Of a stretch of 35,846 bases of DNA, positions 7,365-28,278 are shown piece after piece (position 1 is the first letter of the stretch; each line of letters opens with the position of its first letter). The stretch comes from Dimorphilus gyrociliatus (taxonomy: Eukaryota > Animalia > Annelida). Both the position numbers and the translations under genes were made by a program. The stretch is from NCBI GenBank assembly GCA_904063045.1, contig CAJFCJ010000117.1, forward strand, positions 12,809-48,654, written 5' to 3'. Under the pieces are notes generated by a model. That model made no database searches. It had not been told where the DNA came from and saw only the letters and a list, made by a program, of their open reading frames with translations.

Positions 7365-8453
7365 TTACTTTAATTGTACATAGACAGTATTTGCATAACT
7401 CCGAAATCCTCTAAGGGGTAGTTTCATATTAATTTGAATACTTTTGCAATGTTTCTTTGTAAGTAAAGGAGTTACAGTGCTTCTGAACAATTTATATGTA
7501 CTCTTCTTTTGAGCATCAAATGGATAAAGTAAAATATCGCAAAGATATGGTGGTTCGTAGATAACTGATAGTAATTTGTCAAGGTTACTGCCAACTTTTT
7601 GTCGAAATTTTGAATTCAATTCGAATGATTTATTATAAGCACCAAAATTATCAATGTATCGTTTTGTATAGAATTGGGATGAGACTTTAACTAGACATCC
7701 AGCCGCGTCGCAAGCCTGTCTTACGGAAAGATTATTACTTAGGCCACTGGTCGAACCTGCAAGATAGTTATCATCAAAAATGATATGCTTGAATCCGTGT
7801 TTAGCAGCTTGAACAATTCTTTTATAAACTGATTGATGATCGTCGAAATAGACGATTGTCTTTTCACGTTTAATCTTCTCTTTCGACCAATCAATTCTGT
7901 TGAAATCCAAAAATTTCTTACTCGTAAAATATTTCGTTGAGTTTCTTTTATCTAAATATTGGTTTGGTGTTGTTGGACTAATCACTGTAATTCTTGCTTT
8001 GGGTAGAGCTTTGCGGATAAGCCATGTTCCATAACCTTTGTTGGCACCACTTTCAATCACGTGCTCAGGTTGCATTATCCTCAAGAATGACCATAAAGCA
8101 AATCTGTTGTTTATAGATCCATCTGTAGTGAAATTATGTAATCTTTTTGAAAATATTTGTAGAAAAGGACCAATAAATTGAAAGAATTTGTCTTCCTTGA
8201 AGAATGGAACCAAATGATGATTTCTTCCACATCTATAAATAGACTTTAAATCACTTTTACTTGTGAAACAATCAGTTATTTCATAAGCCAAATTCTTAGG
8301 TTTATTCGAATTTGTACTTGAACTATTATATTTATTAATAGCAGCTCCCTTCTTCTGAATTTCAACTCTGGAATAGACTGTAAATATTAAGATAACTACA
8401 GTAATTACAATTAATAGAATCCAATTGCATCCATTTCTCGAATACACCATCAT
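7365..8453 (-). CDS. Type II membrane protein with class I SAM-dependent methyltransferase-like domain (paralog A), intronless
   Basis: N-terminal TM (WILLIVITVVILIFTVY), motif I-like VIESGANKGYGTW, YFDDHQ and IIFDDNY. The ORF-track start at 8462 is GTG; the first ATG is at 8453. Confidence 0.85.
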   Translation of the reverse strand: MMVYSRNGCNWILLIVITVVILIFTVYSRVEIQKKGAAINKYNSSSTNSNKPKNLAYEITDCFTSKSDLKSIYRCGRNHHLVPFFKEDKFFQFIGPFLQIFSKRLHNFTTDGSINNRFALWSFLRIMQPEHVIESGANKGYGTWLIRKALPKARITVISPTTPNQYLDKRNSTKYFTSKKFLDFNRIDWSKEKIKREKTIVYFDDHQSVYKRIVQAAKHGFKHIIFDDNYLAGSTSGLSNNLSVRQACDAAGCLVKVSSQFYTKRYIDNFGAYNKSFELNSKFRQKVGSNLDKLLSVIYEPPYLCDILLYPFDAQKKSTYKLFRSTVTPLLTKKHCKSIQINMKLPLRGFRSYANTVYVQLK

Positions 8454-9233
8454 TAGTAACACTAAATTCTTTAGTTTACGCCCAAATTAAGAAAAAAATT
8501 TATAAGTCGGACTGCTTTAAAGGGCTGGGTTGGGAATGACTGTTTCGTCTATTGAATTCTCTTTTAAATAGTCCTATTTCTTTCAGGGTTTGGACAAAAA
8601 AATGTTTACTTTTGAATAGAAAATGTGATGAATGGACAACATAGAAAAGCGTACACATACATTCGTCAGCTATACCCTACAATAGAGAAGCAGTATTCAC
8701 CTAGCTTCGCGTAGGCCATTCACATTGTGCGGCAATAAAACCTATTAAATTATATACAGAATATTGCTATTTGCAACCTAGCATTAATATTAAAATTTAT
8801 TAATCTATAAATTTATGATTTTGAACTAAAACTAGTTGAATTAAATATGAATTATGCTTAAATTCTAAGTTTAGATTATATTCACTATCTACTTAACATG
8901 CATTAATTAGATATATTTCCTCCTTATATGCTGATGCTAAAATTACTAACTCAATCAATTGAATATCATTGTTAAAGTAGAATATAAAAAGGGTCAAATA
9001 TACAATCCACATGTTTTCTTGATTGTTGGACTTGTCCTATTCAAATTGTTACATCTTATGCAACTCTCCAACCTGAGAAATTCAACTATTATTTAGAAGA
9101 GGAAAACAATAAAAACATGACCATATTTACAACTTTTCTTTGTCTTCAAATGTTACTTTTGTTTTTGTCAACATTGAGATTTGTGAAGTATCAACCCTTA
9201 AAAGAGTATATAAAGCCTACGAAATTAACAGTT

Positions 9234-9501
9234 GACAGTTCAGTTTTCTAACCGTCAGCTAGTTGTTTAAACTAGCTTGTTTAGAACTAGAAGCTCATTT
9301 TACTCAATACATATTCTTTGCACGAAATACTTGTGTTTTGTTGATTAATTTCTACCGAAATTACATTTGTTAGACTATTTGTGGACGAACTTTAAAGGTT
9401 CTATTTGTGTGAGTACTTTGGCAAGTTGGCAAATGATTGGAAAGGACGATTACAATTGTGACGAACCAGAAATTCATGCAATTACAATACAACAAAGTAC
9501 A
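9234..9501 (+). repeat. Dispersed repeat shared with 29047-29122
   Basis: Segments 9234-9271 (CAGTTCAGTTTT..GTTGTTTAAA) and 9467-9501 (CAGAAATTC..CAATTACAATACAACAAAGTACA) both recur at 29047-29083 and 29088-29122 in the same orientation. Confidence 0.75.
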
Positions 9502-9753
9502 AAAAGCATGAGAATTTTTTATTTTTTTCGAAAATGTCCCTAAAAAAAAATATTTTCCGCCTCAAACTTCGTAGAATATTCTCTACTAGACATATTCCAT
9601 ATTTCCCTTTTGATATCACTGCTATCTTATCATATATAGCTACAGGAACTTTTAAAATTGGGGACTTTTTTTCGCCAAATTTGGCTAGTCAATAATAGTA
9701 TAAATTTGTGACAGGTGCTACGGTATAATTCTCAAACTAATTCTCTGTACTAA

Positions 9754-9766
9754 TAGCGACATCTAT
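9754..9766 (-). promoter_or_regulatory. CTCF-like motif candidate (ATAGATGTCGCTA on - strand)
   Basis: Motif match between divergently transcribed genes. Confidence 0.3.
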
Positions 9767-10728
9767 TTTAGTTACTCCCCCTAGTTGTTTAAAAAATTTT
9801 TAAGAGTATCAAGTCGATAATGCAAGAGGATTTGCGATTAATGACGTGAAACTGGAAATGGTTTAATCCGTTAATCCATAAATTTGGTAATAGCACTTCC
9901 CACGCTATTACAATAATATAGATATTTTTATGTTATTCAATACTTTAAAGATTACTTAAAAGAATTCTTCTCTTCCATTTTCTTTGTTGGTTTATCAATG
10001 AATATAGGCTTATTTATGCAAAATCGCCATTGGCGTCATTGTCATACATAGTCTTGTATATTTTTAAATTTATATGTCAATTTTACAACAGAGTCGCAGG
10101 TGTAAAATTTTGAAAGCCATTTCCAAGTATATTTATTATCAATACCAGTTAAGTTTATGAATTTTTAATGCAATTACCTTTTCTACAAGAATAATTACTG
10201 AGAATTATATAGGTCATAATCTAGACCTTATGGAAAAATAGGAATAATTCTCTCTCCTTTTCGTTTGTTGACGAGGGAAGACACCAATCGATTAAACTAA
10301 AACTGTAATAGTATGATGATTTATAATTATGAAAAATTAATAAAATATTCATAACCTACTTTTCATAGTAAGTTAATAATAGCAAAATATATAACGTAGC
10401 TTATTGTTTAAGTATTAAATATGGCTATATAATTTGAATTTGTGCCTGATAGAAACTGGTAAACAAGTAACACTTTCTTTTTTTCTTTTATGATAAATTT
10501 CGTTAAAAAAATTCTTTACCCATTATAATTGTATGGTTAATTATAAAATTTGAATTATTTCTCGATTAGTCACGTGATAATAGCAAGAAGAAATCTTTTA
10601 TTAAAGTAAATTTAGTTGGATAATTATATATTATATTTTAAATTAAAGCAATTATACATTACGTATAGAAAATAGTCTATATAAGTTCGTTGATTTTCAA
10701 CCAAATTCCTGACAATTGGCGTGACAAA

Positions 10729-12895
10729 ATGAGACAAACTCTCCATCAAATTTTGTTCCTTTTTTCAATCTTTTACGGTTTGTTGTTTTATCAGAAAAAT
10801 ACAACACTGAAATATATTCTTATAGATAGAATTCCTCAAGTGAAATTATTGAATTTAGCGAGAGGAAAGGCAGCTTTTCAAAGTTCTACGTATGGAACTT
10901 ATTCCAATCCCAGAAAACCTCAATTTGCCAATGATGCTAACATTGAAATTTCTCTTCAAAATGTAAATATATTTGTATTTGTATGCATTTCTCTGAAAAA
11001 TCGTCATTATTTCTTGAACAGTACGAATACTGTTCAAGAACAGACAAAGATCCGGAAAGTCACTCTTGGTGGTCCGTTGATTTGGAAGACGTCTATGAAA
11101 TTACGAAAGTGTGTCTTTTAAATATAAACGATGACATTTGTAAGTAAAAAAATTCAAAAATAAATTCAAAAAAATATTCAAAACAATTTAGATACAAATC
11201 TACAACAATTTTACATTTTTGTTGGAAATTCGCCAAAAGACCATTTTTGTCTTTGCTCTTTTGTAACTGATCCAATAAAAAGACCAAGTACAATAGATCC
11301 TTTTCAGTACGATTGCTATTCTTGCCCGCCTACTTGTATTGGATCCTTTGTATCAATTCAATTGTCTGCATCATTTGTAGAATTGATAATATGCGATGTA
11401 GACGTTCGTGGAAGTCTAATTAACAAAAGAGGTAGATGATTGGTTGATTGATTGAGATAATATAAATTTAAACATAACTCATTTTTGTTTGATAAAGATT
11501 CTCATTTATTAAATTTAACAAATACGAAAATAACAACTGGAGGTCACTACCTAAACCATTCGAAAGAATTTGCCATAGACAATGACTATAAGACCTGGTT
11601 TCGTTCAAAATCCGGTTCCTATGGTTCATTTACAAAACCGTATTTCTTGATTGATTGTTTAAAAACGTTAAAAGTTCATGGCATGTTTATTATTTCATTA
11701 GATAAAGATTGTTTGTAAACGATGTTTACTTTTATCTTTTTTAAAATAATATAAAACGTCAATATTTTCATTTTCCAGATATTCTTAAAAGATTTAAACA
11801 AGTATTTATTTCGGTTAAGCAACTACCGGAAACGGATTTCAATTCTAATAGTCAATTTTGCGTTGAACAACTTTCTGGATTGTTTAGAACGGGCCATGAA
11901 CTTTTAATTGTTTGGTGTCATCCTATACTTACGGGAAGATATATTCTTATTAGTATGAAAGACAGTATCAATAGCGATAAAATTTTAGAATTAACGGAAA
12001 TATATGCCTACATTTCTGAGTTTGACAAACACGAGGCGATTGGTTTGTATATCTTTTATTACATCATAAATTATTGAATTTATTGAACGATAGAAACTGG
12101 AAATTCACTTAAATCATACTTAATGGACGTGACCTTGAATAACGTTTCATTATCAAATAATCACTTTGATTTATTAATCGATAACGTTTACTATATTAAT
12201 GATATTAATGGGAGAATACCATTGAATAACTCCGATATCTTAACTCTAAGAATACGGCTTATTCATATTAATTCAATATGTCTGACAGGTTATTTATTGT
12301 TTTAATTGTTTTTTATTTTCCTTACTATCAACACTTTAATTCAATCGTTAATCCTTTTTTTTTCTTTTTTTAAGTCTTTCATACAACGAACTTTACAGCT
12401 GCAATTCAAATTAATATACGTCATTTTCTTAACAATTCAATCCTTTCTTTAACGATTTCTACGTTTTTTAAATATTCCCACACCGTGTGCGTTAAATTCA
12501 ATTCTATTTTAACTAAAAATATTATAATTCAATCGCAAAATGCTGAAGAACTGGCAGAAATTGATCTTATTGCAGTTTCAACTGTATTTGCAGTTGGTGG
12601 AAAATGTTTAGACAATATTCATAAATGGACATATTCAACTTCTCTTCTTCCTAATAATTCTAATCCATTTTACAACATTTTACTAGAAGGTGTAAATACT
12701 GCAAACGATATTGCAGTTTATAAATTAAAAACTGCAACGAATGAATTAACGCATTTATGTGAAAATTTTGATATTTTTGACGAAGATTGGAATTCAAGAA
12801 ATGGTTTACTTTTTCAATGCAAAAAATTCAATGGACTCATTGAAATTAATTCTTATCTTTTAAAGCAATCTCTCACTTTTGTCCATATATTTTAA
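10729..12895 (+). CDS. Secreted multi-domain F-type-lectin (FTP)/F5-8-type-C-like protein; 3' end uncertain
   Basis: Hydrophobic N-terminus and phase-consistent introns 10963-11021, 11140-11191, 11432-11497, 11711-11778, 12043-12093 and 12289-12398. Domain 1 reads NLARGKAAFQSSTY...WWSVDLEDVYEITKV...IICDVDVRG. Domain 2 ends CHPILTGRYILI...LELTEIYAY. Further divergent beta-rich segments follow. Confidence 0.75.
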
Positions 12896-14008
12896 ATCAC
12901 AATAAAACGTTGTACAAAGTGATTGGGAAACAATACAAATTATACGGCCGATATTATAATATTCTTTCGTTTGACTTACTTGTAGTATAGACTCTAATCT
13001 ACGGGGGACGGTTGAGTGGGTTGGTAATTGTAATTTTAACAACAAAATGAATTCTTAGAATCGCAATTCTCTTTAAATTTGCCTTTTAGTTAACGTCCCC
13101 CGCAAGGACTTATAATTACTGATATAATCAATTAATCTATCAGTTAATCAGATATTCGTTTGGTTGATGACAGATGTGGTTATGAACAGCTGCAATTTCA
13201 CCTAAACAACACGATATTATAACCATAAAATTCATTTAAAAATAATATTTATAAATAAGTATAAATAATACATTTATTCTGTATATAGGCCTATTCTTAA
13301 TAATTTTTTATGACTGCTACAAATTTTATTGCTGTATGCGAAATATGTAGATACGAAAATAAAAGAGAAACTAAAAAGCATAGAAAACATCGATGAATAT
13401 CTGGTCAATGACAAAAAAAGAAACATAAAGAATACTCTTCTTGTCCCATATAGCATTCGTAGACTTGTTAAAGTTGCTGTTTAATATTTTGTATCCATAC
13501 TTTCAATTGAATTACTTGTTTCTGTGTCTAGTTAAGGTTCTTTAATAATTCAATTATCTGAGAGGCACTGAATGTTTGAAATGTTTATGTGTCAATCACT
13601 AATTTGATGGGGTTTATGATATTTATTGTTCTCTTGTTTGTTTTTTATATTACTTTTCAAAGTTTCACCTTTTTCTACATTATAACGGAAAGTAACAGAT
13701 AGAAATTTTATTAAAAATTCATTAGCTTGCAACAATAAACAACCTGACTTAATAATCTGTAAAAGATATGCTTTGATTTACATAAATATTTCTAAGCTTT
13801 AACCTTCCTTCATTCATAGTCAATTATGTCACATTTAAACTTTATTCAAAACATTGGGGCTATTTTTTCCTCTTACAGCTGTTATTTCAATGAAAGATTT
13901 TATAGTAGAAGAAATTTTGAATAGTCTGTTTAAGACATGTGTAATCAAACAATAAAAAATCGACCAAACATTTATTACAATAATTTGTTGTTCAACCATC
14001 AAAAACTT

Positions 14009-15073
14009 TTATTTTAATTGAACATACACTGTGTTTGCGTAGCTTGCAAATCCTCTAGACAGTAATCTTATATTTCTTCGAATATTAATGCAGTGTTTCG
14101 TTGACAACAAAGGATTTACAGTGTTTCTAAATAGTTCATAAGTAATCTTCTGCTGCGGATTCGATGGGTAATTTAACACATCGCATAGATATGGTGGTTC
14201 GTAGATAACTGATAGTAATTTGTCAAGATCACTGCCAACTTTTTGTCGAAATTCTGAATTCAATTCGAATGATTTATTAATAGATCCAAAATTATCAATG
14301 TATCGTTTTGTATAGAATTGGGATGAGACTTTAACTAGACATCCAGCCGCGTCGCAAGCCTGTCTTACGGAAAGATTATTACTTAGGCCACTGGTCGAAC
14401 CTGCAAGATAGTTATCATCAAAAATGATATGCTTGAATCCGTGTTTAGCAGCTTGAACAATTCTTTTATAAACTGATTGATGATCGTCGAAATAGACGAT
14501 TGTCTTTTCACGATTAATCTTCTCTTTCGACCAATCAATTCTGTTGAAATCCAAAAATTTCTTACTCGTAAAATATTTCGTTGAGTTTCTTTTATCTAAA
14601 TATTGGTTTGGTGTTGTTGGACTAATCACTGTAATTCTTGCTTTGGGTAGAGCTTTGCGGATAAGCCATGTTCCATAACCTTTGTTGGCACCACTTTCAA
14701 TCACGTGCTCAGGTTGCATTATCCTCAAGAATGACCATAAAGCAAATCTGTTGTTTATAGATCCATCTGTAGTGAAATTATGTAATCTTTTTGAAAATAT
14801 TTGTAGAAAAGGACCAATAAATTGAAAGAAATTGTCTTCCTTGAAGAATGGAACCAAATGATGATTTCTTCCACATCTATAAATAGATTTTATCATGCTT
14901 TTGTTTGTAAAACAATCCGCTAATTTAAATTCTAAATCTGTAAAGATATCTGTACTGAAATTACTTTTATCATTTTGTTGCATAAAGTTTTTGTTAGGAG
15001 TTAAAAAAAATCCAACTATAACCATAAGGCTTATAGCAAAACTACAGAAATAGATTCCTTTTGACTGTCTCAT
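14009..15073 (-). CDS. Type II membrane methyltransferase-like protein (paralog B), intronless
   Basis: N-terminal TM (IYFCSFAISLMVIVGFFL). The catalytic core is almost identical to paralog A (7365-8453). Confidence 0.85.
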   Translation of the reverse strand: MRQSKGIYFCSFAISLMVIVGFFLTPNKNFMQQNDKSNFSTDIFTDLEFKLADCFTNKSMIKSIYRCGRNHHLVPFFKEDNFFQFIGPFLQIFSKRLHNFTTDGSINNRFALWSFLRIMQPEHVIESGANKGYGTWLIRKALPKARITVISPTTPNQYLDKRNSTKYFTSKKFLDFNRIDWSKEKINREKTIVYFDDHQSVYKRIVQAAKHGFKHIIFDDNYLAGSTSGLSNNLSVRQACDAAGCLVKVSSQFYTKRYIDNFGSINKSFELNSEFRQKVGSDLDKLLSVIYEPPYLCDVLNYPSNPQQKITYELFRNTVNPLLSTKHCINIRRNIRLLSRGFASYANTVYVQLK

Positions 15074-15703: not shown

Positions 15704-18700
15704 ATGTTTTCAATCATTCTATTCATAATCAGTTTTACCATAGTTATAATTGACTGTTTTCTAATTGGAGAATATAAGTACAACTTTATCAAATTTTTAA
15801 ATAATAAACAGGATACGGAAATTGATTTTAATGTTACAAATCCACATTTTACACTTGAAAAGATTGACGAAAGTAATATAAGGATTTATGGAAAATTATA
15901 TATTGAATTATTTGAAAATGGTACAAAGTATCCAATATTTCCTACTAGTTTTGCTCAAAAAAATGTTGGTAGCATCTGCACTCGAATGGATTACGATTCA
16001 ACATTCAGCCAACACCATACCTGCCTTAGTAAGGCTTAATTAAGACATTTTGCTTGTTGGATATTTTTTCCATCCTCTACACTAGGGCCATTTCTTTGTA
16101 AGAATAAAATTCTTTTCAATTTTCTTTCAGGAAATTATTCCGAAGTTATGACGTCATTTCAAATATTTTTTGAATTTAATAAACAAGAAAATATTTACAG
16201 AATGTGGTTTTTTTTTGATATATTTTTTAAATATAATTCGTAAAGTTTTTAAAAATTCAACAGGAACGTTGCGAAGATGAGTAGTTTTAAATTTCAACTT
16301 TGTTTAAAGTGTTACAAGAAAAATTCAACATGTAATAAAAAAACAAAAACTTGAAATTATCTACAAATATATAAACAATTTAATTTCATATAATATAGAT
16401 TTGTATAGTATTCAAATTGGCAAAATATATCTACCAGTTTTCAAACGACAAAATACGTCTTGTGTTATTGTCGTTGATAACGATAAACATAGAAAAGATA
16501 TTTGTAAAGCAACTGAATTTTTTATTTGGAAATATGACAATAAAACTGAATATGAATTGTGTTTTTTCAATGGTATGGAGTTTAAAATTTTAATGTCTAC
16601 TGATAATAGAACGGAAATTGAATGTTCATTATCCGAAGTTCAAGGTTAGTTTGTATTAAAATTTGCCAAAAGACCACTATCTATCCACCAAATTGAAATA
16701 GATATTAGTATTGTACCAATGGAAGATGATTTTTTAAAATTTTCCGAATTATCAAAGGTCAAGGATAAATCATTTAAAAGTTTAATGATCCATTCAAAAA
16801 CGTTTGGCAAATTACCACTAACGTTTGCCTTAACTGAACATGAGATAAATTTTTCAATGTGGACCTGCACAAAACTGTCATCATTGTTTATATATCAAAG
16901 AATAAACTTTTATACAAATGACTGGAGTAGGGTAAGTCATTTTACAGTTGGTTTTTTCTTTGCAGTAGAAATATTCGACACTTTTTTTTCTTGCTTTACA
17001 GGAGAAATATTCTTATAGTCAATACGTTAAAGACGTCAACGAAGTACCAATGCTAATCGATTGCAAATGGGATAATTCCTATCTTCAAGGTTGTTCATTG
17101 GCAATTTTAAGACAAACTTACTATACAGTAATGGTGAAATGTTCGAAAATCCTTTCAATTCCGTCTATAAATAGTAAATAAATAAAAAATCTACTGGAAA
17201 ACTGCAAAAGTAGATGTTTTTTTTGTAAAAATAGACTCGAACCTATTAATGACATTTCCAACATCAGGAATGAATAAGAGTAGGAACTCAATGAAAATGG
17301 AAGGAATACCACTTCTATTAATAAATGAACATTATTTCCATATTGAACCTAGAAGACTATTCGCAAAGGAAGCGAAGATTATTTGTCAAAGTTTCGGTTA
17401 TTTGTACGGCACGATTATTACTAAAATAATTAGATTATCTTATATAATCCTGCCAAAATTCCACATAATCTGTCCAGAGTCTAATCAAACAATTTCCGAT
17501 TGCATATTACATAATCTATCCAAGAAAAATTCAGTTTCTATATCAGATTATTATACAATAGCCTTTAAAAAGTACAATTCTTTAGGTTATCTATCATTGA
17601 TGGATATAAGTTATGCATTTATCAAATGTTTGAATAGAACTGTTCCAGGTAATATTTCTTTGAGTAGTTTTGAAACAATATCAACAATTTCTTTTTTGTT
17701 ATTAAGATTATTGCAGTGTAAGATATTCTCAAAATGTCTTTGATACTTGCTATAAATTCTTTAAAGAAAAATATCCAGCGGTTAACAAACCAAACATTGT
17801 TTGTCAACGGAGAAATATGACTGTTGTTGATCTAGCATTTTTTCTAATGAACTCTTTAAATAAAATTGTTGGTAGTGTTAAAAAGAATAAAAATGTTCGG
17901 CCATATCCCAGCTGTTTGTTGATTTTCAATTCTTTTTTTGGCATATATAGTAGATTTTTTACCAATAGATTTTGGTAAAATAAAAACTGGTAATCGTTTA
18001 ACAATAACGACTTCCAGTTCAATGAATTATCCACTTGAATTTCTATGGCTTAATAAAAGGAATAAACTCTCTGATTGTTTTTTTGAAAAGAAAATCATTA
18101 TTGAAAAGTACTCACAGACACCTTGCATTGAATACAAATATGGCTACTTTTCTCATGGATGTGATAATTGTTTAAATGAATATAAACAGATATTATGCGA
18201 AAGATATTTAGGTTCAAAAAATATACATATAGTCTATAGGCTTAAAGTGTTTCGTTAGTGATATTCTATCCAATTGCAGACGTTGGTGGGAGAAGAGAGA
18301 ACGGAATTATCATTAACAAATTTGAATCTGAACAATTGTTCTTCTGTTCTATTGAAAAAGTTTACATTAATGTTATTTATGTTTGCGACGGAAAAATTGA
18401 TTGTCGTACTTCCGGTGAAGATGAATTCAGTTGTGAAACAATAGACTGGTTTCATTGTTCTGAAAATGAAAAAATTCCATTTCAATTAGTTTGCAATCAT
18501 AGAAATGAATGTTCAAATAATCTGGATGAATTGAATTGCGGTATGGAAAGATAAATAATGTGATCTGTCTTATCTTATCTTATCTTCATTTTTTTAATAA
18601 GAATATCAAATTTGCGACAAGTTTTCGTTCAGATGTAAAAATAATATCTGCATTGGTTGGGAAAAACGATGCGATAGGGTAATTAATTGTCAAGACATGT

Positions 18701-21158
18701 CGGATGAATTTTGCCAAAAAGGTTCGAAATAGGCCTAGTTTGTTCTTTATCAATTTCTCCCCTTTTTTCCAGACGATTGCGGAACTGATTCATTCTTATG
18801 TTCAGATCGGATTACTTGCGTAAGGAAATCGTTCGTATGCGATCTCAAGTACGATTGTAAAGATGGATCCGATGAGACAAAAGGATGTCTTGGATTTAGT
18901 GATTCGAATCATCACATGTTGAAAAATTTAAGTAAGATAATTGATTTGATATTATTGAAATACTATTTAAATATCGCTCACGCCTATCTCTTCATCTTCC
19001 AGCCTATTGTCATCAAATGGCTGCGAAACAGGACAAATGTAAATTGTACCAATCTGTAGATGGAAGATATTCATTAACAGTTCAACCTCCTGTAAATGGT
19101 CTATTAAATTGCCAATCAACTAAATGTTCCTTTGGAGAGTATCAATGCAACGAAGATGGCTATTGTATATCAATATCGTTAGTTTGTGATGGAATCTCTC
19201 ATTGCAGAAAAAGAGACGACGAAGATAATTGCGGTAGGAAGAAGAAAAATCAAAAAGTCTACCAGTTTTTTTTCCTTTCTCTGTTACAGATAATTTTGAA
19301 CCCGAAAATGCATTTAAATGCAAAGAAACGAGACTATTCACAACACCGGAAAATGTTTGCAATGGTATAATTGATTGTCACGACGGAAGCGACGAAACTA
19401 GTTGTCAAACTGCTACTGCAAAACAGCAATTATACTGCAATATATCAAATTATATTTTAACTTGTAAACCAAACAGTTTATCTAGTAATATTTTGAATTT
19501 TCAAATGAAAATTCAAGAGAATCCTTTAGCTAAGAGAATTATCCTTCAATATATAACAATTAAGAATAACATCATTAACGAAACGCTTCCGCACGTCACT
19601 TCACTTTTCATGATAAAATCATCCTCTCAACTGCAATTACTGAATATTTTCCCCAACCTTGTTAATCTGGAATTGTTGGATATGAAAATGAATTTTTCTT
19701 ATCATTTTCCAACAAAAGTTGTTAATTTATTACAATTTCTAAAACTGGAGAAAATTTTTAGTAAAGATATTAATAAATTTGAATTTTCGGATTTGAAGAA
19801 CCTTTTAAAATTGGTTTTAAACGATATAAAATCCTTTACGATCCTATCTAAAACTCGTTTTCAAAATATGAAAAACTTAAAAAGTCTAACAATAACGAAA
19901 TGTTTAATAAAAGAAATTCAAAAAGACTCTTTAAAATCATTAATAATGTTAAAATATATAAATTTAAAATTAACAACAATACCGGAAGCGGAGATGGTAT
20001 TTATAGTAAAAAATTTAAAAATGAACCAATTAGAAGAATTGTATAGCGATTATTTTAAATTATGTTGTTTCGCCTGGAAATATCAAAGGATGATGAAAAG
20101 ATGTAAACCAAATAGAGCTTTATTCTCATCATGTTTGGATTTATTAGTATCAAATTATCTTAGAGCTTTTATATGGCCAGTTGCAATTATTGGTTCATTC
20201 TCCAACATTTTGGCTATTGTCTTTAGAATGAAAACATTTTCAAGACCTTCCCATCTATTTTACGTTTCGTTAGCAACTTCCGATTGCATTATGTGTCTTT
20301 GTTTCCTTATTCTAGCTTTTAAGGATCTACTCTATAAAGGGGTTTATATTGATTACGATCTATATTGGAGGAGAAGCGTCCTTTGCCGTCTAATTGGTTG
20401 TTTTATCAATTTTACAATCCTACAATCGTCGTTCTCCCTTTTAATTTTAACATTTGAAAGATATCTTGTTGTTAATTATCCAATTGTCGGCTTTTTCTGT
20501 AAGAGATCTATTGTTATCATTATATTATTGGTAACGACGCTTTTCTCCACATTTGCAACCATTTTTCCCTTATATAAATTTCAGGTAAATTCTTTTTTAA
20601 TTATTTTTTAAGCAAAAGTATACCAGTCTATTTTCTTTCTCTCTGTAGGACTACTATCAAAGAATGTCAATATGTTGTAATATTCAAATAGGAAATCAAA
20701 AGGCAATTGGTTGGTTTTGGTCATTTTTTATCTATAGTATTTGGCTGTTATTAATTAATGCTATTACTGTAACACTTTACTTATTAATAATATTGAAATT
20801 GTTAAAGAGAAAATTGGAAATTAATATTAATAATTCTGAAAAATTGAATAAAAAAGTTCAAGCAACGGCGCTGATGATTGTACTCACAAATTTACTTTCT
20901 TGGTTTCCAATATCAATTTTAGGTTTAAATTATTTTAAATATTGTTTGTTTGATAGTTTTTTTACTTTCCCTCTTCATCTCCTTTTTTTAGGCCAATTAT
21001 CGGTAATTTCAAATTTAACAATCAATAACGAAATATACACATGGATAATAATTATTTTTCTACCATTAAATTCCGTATTGAATCCGATTATTTACAATTA
21101 TTCAGAATTATATAGAAAACAATTGGAAAGGAATAGAAATAGGAAACAATTGCAGTAA
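15704..21158 (+). CDS. GRL101/LGR-type-C-like GPCR with extended ectodomain: SP, degenerate SRCR-like, C-type-lectin-like, 6xLDLa, LRR, 7TM (~1485 aa, 16 exons)
   Basis: Fifteen GT-AG introns (16029-16130, 16204-16263, 16332-16398, 16645-16701, 16932-17001, 17174-17234, 17649-17706, 17872-17953, 18212-18279, 18541-18601, 18722-18772, 18932-19002, 19234-19289, 20585-20648, 20923-20991) give a stop-free 4458-nt CDS. It contains LDLa motifs (e.g. CDLKYDCKDGSDE), LRRs, an LGR hinge (CCFAW..C....FSSCLDLL), ERY in TM3 and NSVLNPIIY in TM7. Confidence 0.85.
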
Positions 21159-23375: not shown

Positions 23376-25871
23376 TTAAATAATTAATGATACTCTGGAA
23401 TATTTTTGCTGTAGATATGCTCTTATTCTTTCGGTAATTCTGCATTCGTTTAAATATAATTCCTTTAAAGTTAATGATGAACTTTGAAGAGCTTCGATAA
23501 TCTTCTCTAATCCTTCTCCCATTTCAGTATTTCCGGTTAGAGATAAATACTGAATTTGAGATAATTTTCTCAATTCAACTGCAATTTTACGGCAAATTTG
23601 TGAATTTAAATTACATTTAGATAAATTAATATCTTTCAAAAATGGTGAACATTTTCCAATCTGTTTTAAAATATCAATTAATCCATTTTTCATATCTGGA
23701 TTTCCGGTTAATTGTAATCTTACAATACTTTTAAATTTCTTCAATTCAACTGTTAAACTTTCGCATAGCTCAACATTTAAATTACAATCACTTATTTCAA
23801 TTGATGTTAGAGTATTACACGAATCTCTGTAGACGCTTTTCAATCCTTTTCCTATCATTTGATTCTGACTTAGATTAAGAATCTCGATTCGGCAACATTT
23901 TGTCAAAAGTTGAGAAAGATAATTGCAATGTTCTTCATTCAAATTGCAATTTTTCAAGATAAGAAGTTTTAAAGTTTTAGAAGAGTTTTCCAGTCCTTTA
24001 CAAAAATCTTTAAATACATTTCCAGTTGATAAATTTCTATTTCCGGTTAGATAAATCTCTTCCAGTCTCTTACATAATTTTATTAATTCTGCCAAACTTT
24101 TACAAGTAATCTCATCTAAATTACAATCCGTCAGAGAAATAAATGTTAAAGTGCTACTGGAATTTTGCAGTTGATTGCAGATATTTGATGAATCATAGTT
24201 CATATTTAGATTTCGTTCCAAATTAATAAATTTAATGGAATAACATTTCGTTAACAGATTACCAATACAAGCCGCCATTTTCTTGGTTATACCACCATCA
24301 TGAAAACTAATCTTTTCTAAACTGTTAGATGATTCTTCTAACCCTTTACATAACTCAGAAAATCCATTAGTATCATTCTTATCCATTCCTAAATTATTTC
24401 CAAAATCAATTATCCTAATTCTAGGACAATTGATAAGTAATTTTCCAAGATGTCTACAAGCTTTATAGTCTAAATCACAATTATAAAGGTCAATGGAGGT
24501 TAATGAATTATGAATAATTTCAATGCAATTGAATATTTCATAGCCAATTATTTGATTTTTTGATAGATTTAATTGTTGAATTTTTGAACAATTTTTCAAT
24601 AATTTTCCAATTTGCTTCAATGAATCTGTGTCTAAATTACATTTTTCAAAATTAATATTTCGCAATGTCTTGGAAGATTTTTCAAAAAGAGCTTGACAAA
24701 TTCTTAATAATTTATCACCAATATTTAAATTATTTGATAAATTTAAATATTCAAAATTACAACATTTCAATAATAATGACGTTATTGATTCGCACTGTTT
24801 TGCATTTAAATTACAATTACTTAATTCTAATGATTTTAGAGTAAATGTTGATTTTTTTATATTTTCACAGATTATCATTAATCCATTTCCCATATTTAAA
24901 TTTTGTGATAAATTTAAATGTTCAATTACGTTACAATAATTTAAAATCCATTTTCCAATAGTCTCGCACATATTTTCAATTAACATACAATTTTGTATTA
25001 TTAGAACTTTTAATGTTCTAACTGAATTGTTTAGGTTTAAACAGATTTGTGATAGGTTGTTACTAATGAATAGATTATGAGATAAGTTAATCTCTTCTAT
25101 ATCTGAATTTGTTTGTAAAATATTTAATACTTTTTTCATATCACTTTTGAAAAAACATTTTTTTGAAAAATCAAATTTTTTTCCTAATTTTCTTCCAAAT
25201 TTTCTTTCAATTTGTTTATTGTCGATTTTATAATGAATTTTCACGTCATTTTCAATAGAAAACGTTACGTTTTCGTTTACGAATGTTTTTAAAATTTCTA
25301 CATCAGGTAATTGATTACCTTTCGAAGGGATAATTGAATTTATCATTTCCAATCTCTGATCGCTAATTTCGTTAATTTCATTATAAATGTTATCCAATTG
25401 TTTGTCAATACTTATTTTCAATTGTTGCTTAATTTCGTCAATTTTTTGTTTATATTGTCGCTTTTTCAACAGTTCTTTCTCTCTGTATTGCTCAATGGTT
25501 TTTTCGTGTATTACCATTGTTGTAATATTACATAATTTGTGGTTTTCTCTAACGCATATGTCACATAAATATGGTATGTTGTGATCTATACAGAATATTG
25601 AAGTCTCTTTTTTATGATTTTCACACCAATTCCTTGTTGGCGTTATTATACTCTCTGGTAAATCAATAATTCCATTAGTAGGTATTTTACAAGCTTCTTT
25701 GCAAGTGAAACAAATAATTTCTCCGTTCTTAACTTTTGATTCTTCTTGTAAACATTGCAAACAAAACGTATGATGGCACGGTAATGTTTTTGGATTCCTC
25801 TTTAACCATAATTTTGAACAGATAGCACAAGTGACTAAGTTCTCTTTAATCGAATATTCGACGGTAGCCAT
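23376..25871 (-). CDS. TRIM-like RING-B-box-coiled-coil protein with ~20 RNI-like LRRs
   Basis: RING CAIC..LPCHHTFCLQC..CFTC; B-box-like CENH..FCIDH..LCDIC..NHKLC; a charged coiled coil; then ten ~56-aa A/B LRR pairs (LNLSxN / LxxLxLxNC). The likely start is MATVEY at 25871; the ORF is open to 25958. Confidence 0.88.
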   Translation of the reverse strand: MATVEYSIKENLVTCAICSKLWLKRNPKTLPCHHTFCLQCLQEESKVKNGEIICFTCKEACKIPTNGIIDLPESIITPTRNWCENHKKETSIFCIDHNIPYLCDICVRENHKLCNITTMVIHEKTIEQYREKELLKKRQYKQKIDEIKQQLKISIDKQLDNIYNEINEISDQRLEMINSIIPSKGNQLPDVEILKTFVNENVTFSIENDVKIHYKIDNKQIERKFGRKLGKKFDFSKKCFFKSDMKKVLNILQTNSDIEEINLSHNLFISNNLSQICLNLNNSVRTLKVLIIQNCMLIENMCETIGKWILNYCNVIEHLNLSQNLNMGNGLMIICENIKKSTFTLKSLELSNCNLNAKQCESITSLLLKCCNFEYLNLSNNLNIGDKLLRICQALFEKSSKTLRNINFEKCNLDTDSLKQIGKLLKNCSKIQQLNLSKNQIIGYEIFNCIEIIHNSLTSIDLYNCDLDYKACRHLGKLLINCPRIRIIDFGNNLGMDKNDTNGFSELCKGLEESSNSLEKISFHDGGITKKMAACIGNLLTKCYSIKFINLERNLNMNYDSSNICNQLQNSSSTLTFISLTDCNLDEITCKSLAELIKLCKRLEEIYLTGNRNLSTGNVFKDFCKGLENSSKTLKLLILKNCNLNEEHCNYLSQLLTKCCRIEILNLSQNQMIGKGLKSVYRDSCNTLTSIEISDCNLNVELCESLTVELKKFKSIVRLQLTGNPDMKNGLIDILKQIGKCSPFLKDINLSKCNLNSQICRKIAVELRKLSQIQYLSLTGNTEMGEGLEKIIEALQSSSLTLKELYLNECRITERIRAYLQQKYSRVSLII

Positions 25872-26103
25872 TTTTTTCTTTGGTCTAATTCTCTTCCCTC
25901 TACAGACAATGATTCTTTTACTATGTGTATTATGACTATTTATGACTAATTCATTCAAAAATATCGATCAGTCTAACGGAAGGGGGAAATGATTTAGCTA
26001 TATGGTTTTTTTGAATCGAATATCACATTTATTATGATTATAAAGTAGAAATTTTAACAATCAAAAATTGAACGCATACGATATTGTGAAATACAAAAAA
26101 AAT

Positions 26104-27247: not shown

Positions 27248-27439
27248 GTTATTGTTGAAAACGCCCACTCTTATGGTTTTACCCTAACCGTAACCCAGCC
27301 CTGGACGCTATTTTAAGTGTTTATTGTTTGGTCCCACCTAATTAAGTGAAAGTTAAAGTGACACCGACGCAATTCCAGCCAATAATCAGAACATTAGTTA
27401 TAAAAAGTTTAAAACCACTAGTGGACGTTTTCAATAACC
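27248..27439. mobile_element. MITE-like element related to 6988-7197 and 34806-35014, in opposite orientation
   Basis: Inverted ends GTTATT(GTT)GAAAACGCCCACT / AGTGGACGTTTTCAATAAC. The subterminal TTTTACCCTAACCGTAACCCAGCCCT is the reverse complement of the AGGGCTGGGTTA..TTAGGGTAAAA block in the other copies. Confidence 0.65.
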
Positions 27440-28278
27440 ACCAATTTTTTGTGCTACTGTACAACTCTGGTTATATTTAACATGAAAATTTAACAAGAAA
27501 ATGCCATAACATTGGCCCAACAATGGTTTGATTAGTCAGCTTGAAGGCTCATCTTTAATTACGAATAAAGGTTTGGCCAAGTTATAATTTAATTAACTTG
27601 CCTAGGGTGTGGCCAAGTTATAATTCAATTAACCTTCCTAAATGTTCAACCTTGTAACATCCTCTTACTAAACATAAATATGAACTACACATTTCGGCAA
27701 CTGTAAAGTGATGATTGGATGTCAGAGGCAAACCTCAAAGTATATAAATCATTACTATTCTCATTCTGCATGCAGCTTCCATCTGGACCCAAGGACCTGG
27801 GAAGATAAGCTGGAAACAACCTCCACTGGAACCATGCATCTACTCCTCAACATTGGAAGACAGTTTGGTAATTTGTCAACCTGCTATTACAAACTATCTA
27901 CTCTGCTATTGAACTCTCATATTGTTACTTGCTTAAGTATTATTATTGCAAATAAACCATTTTAATTTTAAACACTTGTTTAAAAGGTTCGAGTAGAACC
28001 AGTATTGTTATAACTTGCAAGAGCAGTACAGTGTCACCTTTTAAAGGAACAGATTATATTAAATCACCACATGACATAGATTCATCTCTCTTTGTTTTAC
28101 AAAATATCATTTTCAGTTTTTCAACAGAATGCCAGTATTTCTCAGATAAGATATGTGAAAATCACTCTTGACCAGTCCAGATTTTCAGCAATTGTTTTGA
28201 GGCAGTATTCTTTTCTTCTTGCTCAATCCTTAGGTGTAAGATTAACTCTTTGTCTTATCCTTTTATATTTATAATTTT

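Follow-up and report, generated by a model that had tools for sequence, protein, structure and literature searches.

Tandem intronless genes for membrane-anchored, methyltransferase-like proteins in the annelid Dimorphilus gyrociliatus: candidate sugar O-methyltransferases of the secretory pathway

Introduction

A 35,846-nucleotide stretch of the genome of the annelid Dimorphilus gyrociliatus (GenBank assembly GCA_904063045.1, contig CAJFCJ010000117.1, positions 12,809 to 48,654 of the forward strand), referred to here in its entirety as the window, contains two related single-exon genes, gene A and gene B. These tandem paralogues probably encode type II membrane proteins (N-terminus in, C-terminus out) with a luminal, divalent cation- and S-adenosylmethionine (SAM)-dependent O-methyltransferase domain, whose acceptor would be a sugar hydroxyl in the Golgi or elsewhere in the secretory pathway; the probability of this assignment is put at roughly 0.55. 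Both genes have intact open reading frames (ORFs), encode a hydrophobic anchor followed by a domain modelled with a methyltransferase fold, retain the invariant residues of their family and evolve under purifying selection, and the family to which they belong is repeatedly associated with glycan-building enzymes.

O-methylation of glycan sugars is a widespread feature of nematodes, molluscs, flatworms, annelids, algae and non-seed plants, and the methylated sugars are recognised by lectins of the innate immune system. An earlier, sequence-only reading of the window had held that the enzymes responsible are largely unidentified. The literature agrees in three cases: the N-glycan methyltransferases of C. 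elegans (PMC7614267, 2023), the N-glycan O-methyltransferase of Chlorella (PMC7773692, a 2020 review) and the enzyme that forms the methyl ethers of plant rhamnose (PMC12209756, 2025) are each stated to be unidentified. In C. elegans, glycan methyltransferases inferred from genetics are proposed to methylate fucose or mannose on N- and O-glycans in the lumen, in dependence on samt-1, a SAM transporter of the MFS_5 family (PMC7614267). For annelids, PMC4776704 serves as a secondary source, citing a report of methylated sugars from Alvinella. If the assignment made here is correct, the gene pair would provide the first entry point, at the level of genes, to the O-methylation of glycans in animals.

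Predicted fold and classification

An AlphaFold2 model was built from an alignment of 130 family members, of which 120 were drawn from protein collections and ten from viral and bacterial loci. The model has a mean predicted local distance difference test score (pLDDT) of 84.8, rising above 95 in the core, and a predicted template modelling score (pTM) of 0.81, and it adopts the class I SAM-methyltransferase fold. In comparisons with solved structures, the highest score was obtained with rat COMT (Z 12.3, root-mean-square deviation 3.0, 168 residues aligned). PFOMT, CCoAOMT, TrmR and PaMTH1 scored about 10.4-11, CmcI 10.7, and the sugar O-methyltransferases SpnH, SpnK and MeT1 9.3, 9.0 and ~9, respectively. 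A search independent of Foldseek, covering 48,161 PDB representatives, ranked at the top 50 chains that are without exception SAM-dependent methyltransferases or proteins designed from one, and nearly all are plainly class I. The modelled fold is accompanied by a conserved E-x-G-x-x-x-G loop. As judged from the model, membership of the class I methyltransferase superfamily is certain and membership of its COMT-like subgroup probable. The Rossmann-type methyltransferase fold anticipated in the sequence-only reading is borne out by the model and by its structural neighbours.

COMT, CCoAOMT/PFOMT and TrmR, which make up the Methyltransf_3 type, have the same order of motifs as the window proteins: an E-x-G-x-x-x-G loop, an acidic pair after strand beta-4 and a D-N pair after beta-5. 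In the model, D196/D197 and D220/N221, both nearly invariant, follow strands 191-195 and 215-218, a placement read from the model. The differences are nevertheless considerable. The window proteins share only ~11% identity with COMT-type enzymes and match none of their profiles; they have extra N-terminal helices, which carry a family-specific motif, and inserts of ~100 residues in the C-terminal half. Furthermore, the known COMT-type members are cytosolic and act on catechols, CoA esters or tRNA, rather than in the secretory lumen.

The sequence-only reading had placed the proteins with sugar O-methyltransferases of the Methyltransf_24/TylF type, and this part of it was not upheld. The window proteins are not matched by the Methyltransf_24 (PF13578) or TylF (PF05711) profiles, alignment by hhalign to one genuine Methyltransf_24 domain gives a probability of 1.6%, and the PF13578 threshold is just exceeded by a single relative, a Phycisphaerae fusion protein (27.6 against 26.3 bits). 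RMNT_CmcI (PF04989) gives no significant match, the best being one bacterial relative at E 0.058, and the family profile meets CmcI in the PDB at E 0.94. The nearest structures are of the COMT rather than the TylF type. Methyltransf_3 (PF01596) fares no better as a profile, as neither the window proteins (E cut-off 1) nor 59 family members (E cut-off 0.01) match it; one Chlamydiae relative reaches a sub-threshold 20.7 bits. Likewise, a Pfam scan of the domain region gave a match in 0 of 59 sampled relatives, and NCBIfam yielded nothing usable for them either. Among neighbours in the ESM Atlas, found by features and by shape, the top clusters are uncharacterised or labelled 'methyltransferase' and are commonest in Streptophyta, followed by clusters from viruses and bacteria labelled 'cephalosporin hydroxylase family', Methyltransf_3/24 and RMNT_CmcI. 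By profile comparison, the family lies outside Methyltransf_3, Methyltransf_24, TylF and CmcI as these are defined, and with the model taken into account the most suitable place for it is among the COMT-like, cation-dependent O-methyltransferases, as a variant that is new and uncurated. It is called here the IESG...DDHQ...DDNY family after its three motifs.

Architecture and membrane topology

The two intronless ORFs described in the sequence-only reading, each with a short tail, one transmembrane segment, a stem and a domain bearing the three motifs, are present as reported (Table 1). The tail is basic, the stem comprises ~45 disordered residues, which AlphaFold leaves unstructured (pLDDT under 50-60), and the domain that follows is ~275 residues long. 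The gene A ORF as listed extends from a GTG codon (7365-8462), with the first ATG at 8453; an AATAAA sequence lies ~30 nt downstream of the gene B stop codon.

Table 1. Features of the gene pair (window coordinates; hydrophobicity is the Kyte-Doolittle maximum over 19 residues)
Feature	Position	Strand	Description
Gene A coding sequence	7365..8453	-	Single exon from first ATG, 362 aa (P0002); same product in protein database
Gene A signal-anchor	8373..8423	-	WILLIVITVVILIFTVY; hydrophobicity 2.62; sequence unrelated to gene B anchor
Gene A predicted catalytic domain	7368..8198	-	aa 86-362; same motifs as gene B, 88% identity to gene B
Gene A conversion tract	7665..8204	-	Partner of 14309-14848
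Gene B coding sequence	14009..15073	-	Single exon, ATG start, 354 aa (P0001); identical protein in database
Gene B signal-anchor	15002..15058	-	GIYFCSFAISLMVIVGFFL, after basic tail MRQSK; hydrophobicity 2.27; modelled helix 5-24
Gene B predicted catalytic domain	14012..14842	-	aa 78-354; modelled class I SAM-methyltransferase fold, inserts in C-terminal half
Gene B conversion tract	14309..14848	-	540 nt, 99.6% identity to gene A tract (two differences)
Motif I	gene B 14672-14707, gene A 8028-8063	-	HVIESGANKGYG; glycine-rich predicted SAM loop with E126, G128, G132
DDHQ, after beta-4	gene B 14477-14488, gene A 7833-7844	-	D196, D197, H198 invariant or nearly so
DDN(Y), after beta-5	gene B 14411-14419, gene A 7767-7775	-	D220, N221 nearly invariant

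The features of type II topology, all assessed in silico, are the basic tail with its hydrophobic segment, the low-pLDDT stem, a cysteine pair and N-glycosylation sequons. Six cysteines and five to six N-x-S/T sequons fall in the predicted luminal part of the window proteins. Two of the cysteines, C67 and C240, are found in 86% and 83%, respectively, of the 120 rows from protein collections and in 0 of the ten viral and bacterial rows, a distribution that fits a luminal disulfide. The type II, luminal placement suggested by the sequence-only reading agrees with both the cysteine distribution and the sequons. Within the family, 109 full-length members have an N-terminal extension, and in 73 of these it includes a strongly hydrophobic segment. 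Stand-alone relatives from viruses and bacteria (~250-290 aa) lack the extension.

Members and conservation of the family

With a cut-off of E 1e-3, an exhaustive profile search recovered 1,127 cluster representatives, of which 176 also pass a cut-off of 1e-30. By contrast with the profile search, a word-index search with a window protein returned only four relatives, and one with a 59-row alignment returned seven proteins and added nothing; an Owenia protein used as query was the sole source of further named members. Thirty clusters were looked up, leading to six named sources. The window proteins themselves match the 130-row profile over their full length (286 and 284 bits), and both possess the three motifs as well as Y..Y..LK at the C-terminus.

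The family extends across plants, protists, the annelid Owenia fusiformis, viruses and some bacteria. Owenia has three paralogues on three chromosome-scale contigs (37-62 Mb). Named plant members come from Selaginella (P0054), Prunus (P0083) and Zizania (P0182) and are labelled only 'hypothetical' or 'uncharacterized', while the protist members are transcripts from the foraminifer Bolivina and from a marine protist in MMETSP. The sequence-only reading had pointed to an uncharacterised plant or algal family with a matching order of motifs. That signature is real: the Zizania and Prunus proteins carry MIESGAFKGHSTWVLRQAM ... VFFDDHQ ... KR..QA..GF.HL.FEDNY, and Selaginella has a member as well. 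Land plants, angiosperms included, have clear members with the same motifs, which are candidates for the unassigned sugar methyl ethers of walls and glycans. A literature search found no publication describing the family.

Across the 130 rows, G128, D175, D197 and R204 are invariant, and E126, G132, D196, H198, D220, N221, E292 and P294 are at least 90% conserved. Both window proteins retain every one of these residues. Confirmation of the assignment would allow annotation of more than 1,000 clusters of 'hypothetical' proteins, and would justify a new Pfam family.

Association with glycan biosynthesis

The evidence for a sugar acceptor comes from the genetic context of the relatives, which are fused or adjacent to genes of glycosyltransferase (GT) families GT2, GT11, GT17, GT47, GT61 and GT77-like, to FkbM and to GDP-mannose dehydratase genes. 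In one viral contig (L019, 120 kb, IMG/VR), the domain lies between GT47 and GT2 in a fusion protein of 822 residues. In other viral contigs (L006 and L014, from a viral set of 120-210 kb), a gene of ~250 codons stands inside a co-directional cassette; jointly, two viral cassettes encode a GDP-mannose 4,6-dehydratase, a GT47 protein, a DXD glycosyltransferase, a DegT aminotransferase and a second methyltransferase.

Longer fusions occur in bacteria. In a Phycisphaerae metagenome-assembled genome (MAG; L023) and in Okeania sp. KiyG1 (L024), the domain is found within proteins of ~1,900 residues or more, in the order GT11 (the fucosyltransferase family), the domain, Glyco_trans_1_2, TPR and GT1/GT4, preceded by FkbM in Okeania only. 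The threshold-grazing Methyltransf_24 match of the Phycisphaerae protein falls inside the domain. These giant proteins look like a glycan assembly line contained in one polypeptide. Elsewhere, the Mycolicibacterium sphagni copy sits between GT87 and GT2-DegT genes, a copy in a Chlamydiae MAG adjoins a GT2 gene, and in long proteins from metagenome and assembly collections the domain is joined to Nucleotid_trans, GT17, GT61, GT2 or FkbM. No phenylpropanoid or catecholamine genes were seen beside the relatives examined.

The link to glycans proposed in the sequence-only reading therefore gains support from repeated fusion and adjacency to glycosyltransferase and sugar-nucleotide genes. Wherever the neighbours of relatives are informative, they belong to glycan biosynthesis, and a sugar acceptor is the best guess.

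Proposed reaction and comparison with known systems

By analogy with COMT-type enzymes, E126, G128 and G132, together with D175, would hold SAM, while D196/D197 and D220/N221 would hold Mg2+ or Mn2+ and so position the acceptor hydroxyl; H198, or R204 nearby, may assist its deprotonation. The C-terminal inserts (residues ~223-345), in which the paralogues differ, could make up the binding site for the acceptor. With their unrelated tails and anchors, the two enzymes may occupy separate cisternae or act in separate cell types. The predicted acceptor is a sugar hydroxyl, either on a glycan or on a sugar donor, and the products would be methyl-ether sugars on glycoproteins, glycolipids or mucus.

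A luminal enzyme of this kind would be supplied with SAM by an MFS_5 transporter of the SAMT-1/GoSAMT type. This family has been proposed as the Golgi SAM importer in C. elegans and Arabidopsis (bioRxiv 10.1101/2021.07.06.451061). The D. gyrociliatus genome holds two MFS_5 genes (SAMT-1/GoSAMT/MFSD5 family; 240 and 205+128 bits) at C13:1252909-1253883 and C19:3426141-3427366 (L032-L034), one of which looks intronless while the other is split into pieces. For sugar methylation, their presence is permissive evidence only.

Several known systems resemble parts of the proposed arrangement. CmcI and the rhamnosyl O-methyltransferases, along with enzymes of the Methyltransf_24/TylF type (MycF, SpnH and SpnK), share the class I fold and have sugar hydroxyls as acceptors; unlike the window proteins, CmcI and the TylF-type enzymes are soluble, bacterial and belong to antibiotic or glycolipid pathways. 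In chlorovirus PBCV-1, A064R combines two glycosyltransferase domains with a third domain that is a rhamnose O-methyltransferase and needs divalent cations, and this domain and A061L are proven class I rhamnose 2-O- and 3-O-methyltransferases (PMC9614988). The GT-methyltransferase-GT arrangement of the 822-residue viral relative is akin to that of A064R. A064R and A061L differ from the window proteins in being viral and cytoplasmic and in having no anchor.

In plants, the DUF579 enzymes GXM and AGM1/2 are type II Golgi proteins that O-methylate glucuronic acid (GlcA; PMC12209756), using SAM imported by GoSAMTs (bioRxiv 10.1101/2021.07.06.451061). Their topology is like that of the window proteins, although they constitute a separate sequence family with no detected similarity. 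The samt-1-dependent enzymes of C. elegans match the window proteins in both proposed reaction and compartment. More tentatively, and with somewhat less than even confidence, it may be suggested that an ancient family of Golgi sugar O-methyltransferases makes the methyl-ether sugars of annelids, and perhaps some of the unassigned ones in plants and algae, while soluble versions serve phages or large viruses and some bacteria in glycan cassettes of their own.

As a candidate, the family is concrete and cheap to test, being compact, intronless and predicted to be secretory, with a complete set of active-site-like residues and ties to glycosyltransferases in independent contexts. If its function were confirmed, it would open the way to knockouts and to glycoengineering, for example to obtain algal or invertebrate expression hosts freed of immunogenic methyl groups.

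Duplication, gene conversion and selection

The gene A and gene B proteins are 88% identical across their last 309 residues and are paralogues. At the DNA level, their similarity (92%) is confined to positions 7365-8281 and 14009-14925, reaching from the stop codon up to the stem, and the tails, anchors and flanks show no relationship. A 540-nt core is nearly identical between the genes, whereas their last 100 codons are only 71-83% identical, and this pattern indicates an older duplication whose catalytic core has lately been homogenised by gene conversion. In the unconverted C-terminal third, dS is 0.48 and dN/dS 0.29, values indicating that both genes are under purifying selection. Outside this homogenised core, the tail, the anchor, the stem and the C-terminal third have diverged, which suggests that the enzymes are distinct in their location, expression or acceptor.

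A search of the whole genome (77.9 Mb, 349 contigs) found only two further copies, giving four loci in all. More divergent paralogues in this genome can be ruled out because a profile search returns the same four loci. The first additional copy (L003, C128:91270-95124) is 98.9% identical to gene B and its upstream region over 1.8 kb, and carries a 17-nt deletion and a TGA codon; public DNA reads contain the variant with this deletion as well. This copy abuts a repeat that recurs at window positions 27436-27736 (95%). The second (L005, C28:1010257-1013231) is 63% identical, lacks residues ~97-134, including motif I, and has its two halves in different frames; it is probably a pseudogene. Both copies look degenerate. 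In three DNA runs (X1-X3), word depth over the conserved core (window 13997-14885) is ~480-570, against ~91 in single-copy flanks. This suggests about five copies of the core, compared with three near-identical cores in the assembly.

Points against the assignment and alternative explanations

A number of findings weigh against sugar O-methyltransferases of the secretory pathway. Scans of the window proteins with Pfam and NCBIfam matched no model, and sequence searches of the PDB, with the protein and with two family profiles, gave nothing significant, the top matches being spurious (Tako8, an aldolase) or weak methyltransferases (E 0.04-0.9). The methyltransferase assignment accordingly leans on predicted structure and genetic context. 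The gradient of structural scores is shallow (Z 12.3 to 8.7), such that structure fixes neither subfamily nor acceptor, and the closest solved structures act on catechols, CoA esters or tRNA and not on sugars. The contextual evidence is drawn from distant relatives (25-35% identity), none of them animal. At the end of beta-2 (position 151), the usual site of an acidic ribose-binding residue, the window clade has Ser or Thr, and at position 232, where ~90% of the family has Asp, it has Asn beside a six-residue insertion. Finally, no RNA run holding the locus was found among public sequencing runs.

One alternative is that the proteins are active SAM methyltransferases whose acceptor, luminal or at the cell surface, is not a carbohydrate; it could be a lipid, a protein side chain or a small molecule of catechol or phenolic type. 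The best structural matches, COMT, PFOMT and CCoAOMT, are catechol or phenylpropanoid O-methyltransferases. Membrane-bound COMT is likewise anchored by an N-terminal helix, and in COMT a metal site resembling DD...DDN serves to activate a catechol hydroxyl. This alternative is nonetheless considered unlikely. The relatives are joined to glycosyltransferases and sugar-nucleotide enzymes and never, among those examined, to phenylpropanoid or catecholamine genes. In addition, H198, R204, D232 and E292 are specific to the family and, like the C-terminal inserts of ~100 residues, are absent from COMT-type profiles, with no Pfam match. Should the acceptor prove not to be a carbohydrate, the proteins would still constitute a new, luminal branch of COMT-like enzymes.

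The substitutions at positions 151 and 232 also raise the prospect that the proteins are catalytically dead, either as pseudoenzymes or as scaffolds that bind glycans or SAM and have kept the fold without the activity, and the decay of the two other copies in the genome is in keeping with this. Against it, the ten most conserved residues of the family are intact in both proteins, and selection in the C-terminal third (dN/dS 0.29) is that of a constrained protein. Position 151 is Ser or Thr in 50 of the 130 rows (Asp or Glu in 79), with full conservation elsewhere. Loss of activity is thus regarded as very unlikely.

It might also be supposed that the ORFs are unexpressed relics, or that they arose as an artefact of assembly or contamination, which would be in line with the missing RNA run and with the excess of core copies in the reads (~5x flank depth) over those assembled. 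However, DNA runs from two independent studies contain the locus, with contigs that connect the pair to its animal flanks, and the contig of the pair has animal genes for 7tm_1 G protein-coupled receptors (GPCRs), an LDLa protein and a RING protein. Both frames are intact in DNA where stops occur at 0.082 per codon, and selection is purifying. This explanation is scarcely credible.

Origin of the gene pair

The sequence-only reading had left open whether the genes were patchily retained or horizontally acquired, a question that is independent of function. Relationships were examined with quick trees (FastTree and IQ-TREE), and constrained topologies were compared by the approximately unbiased (AU) test. 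Three proteins from AT-rich Logan assemblies, two of them from one run set, join the window proteins in a clade with strong support. When the window clade was forced together with the Owenia paralogues, the log-likelihood (lnL) was 15.2 above that of the free quick search (p-AU 0.856); when it was forced together with the viral and bacterial rows, the gain was 3.9 lnL (p-AU 0.589). The AU test rejects neither grouping, so that the tree allows transfer from a virus or bacterium without requiring it.

Acquisition from a virus, a bacterium or another eukaryote, in place of descent as an old animal gene, would be consistent with the absence of introns and with the sparse animal record of the family: Owenia is the sole animal among the named matches, and the ESM Atlas has no animal-dominated cluster of at least 50 members. 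The window clade also has a long stem (1.44 substitutions per site) with an unsettled placement, and its grouping with viral and bacterial rows survives the AU test. Yet the grouping with Owenia survives as well, and with the higher likelihood. The window proteins carry C67, C240, S151, S200, D219 and the N-terminal anchor, all absent or rare in the sampled viral and bacterial proteins, and these characters speak for an origin within the branch of the family that has the anchor and the cysteines, rather than from those proteins. The GC content of the genes matches that of the surrounding animal genes, and a relative in another AT-rich genome also has an LDLa gene as its neighbour, which hints weakly at shared synteny. 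Horizontal acquisition is improbable on present evidence, and patchy retention fits slightly better.

The relative in question, an orthologue-like gene (Logan SRR23372229), sits divergently beside an LDLa-domain ORF, much as gene B sits beside an LDLa-LRR GPCR gene. The two LDLa sequences (L035:2809-3216 and window 18628-18882) are 34% identical over a single LDLa module, and the synteny is weak.

Genomic neighbourhood

The genome is AT-rich, and the window, with a GC content of 28.5%, is animal-type DNA on a contig where rhodopsin-type GPCR ORFs, a gene for an LDLa/LRR receptor and one for a RING protein are found. At the observed stop frequency, an open frame of 354 codons is expected ~5e-9 times per window; this frequency, together with relatives down to E 1e-124, rules out a chance ORF. 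A bacterial or viral contaminant contig can likewise be dismissed because the pair is flanked by animal genes, to which contigs from the DNA runs connect it.

The intron-rich neighbours noted in the sequence-only reading are found in part. Two neighbours, the LDLa-LRR GPCR gene (15704-21158) and the gene lying between A and B, are broken into many ORF pieces, but a 7tm_1 GPCR (1616-2545) and an 860-aa RING protein (23376-25958) are, like the pair itself, single ORFs.

The gene between A and B is a multi-exon gene at window positions 10850-12900, on the + strand and hence opposite to the pair. One of its exons (10983-11147) gives a sub-threshold match to a discoidin/galactose-binding-like profile (PF22633, E 1.5e-4), and ORF pieces nearby resemble F-type-lectin sequence by eye. 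The nesting of a sugar-binding gene within the methyltransferase pair may be a coincidence.

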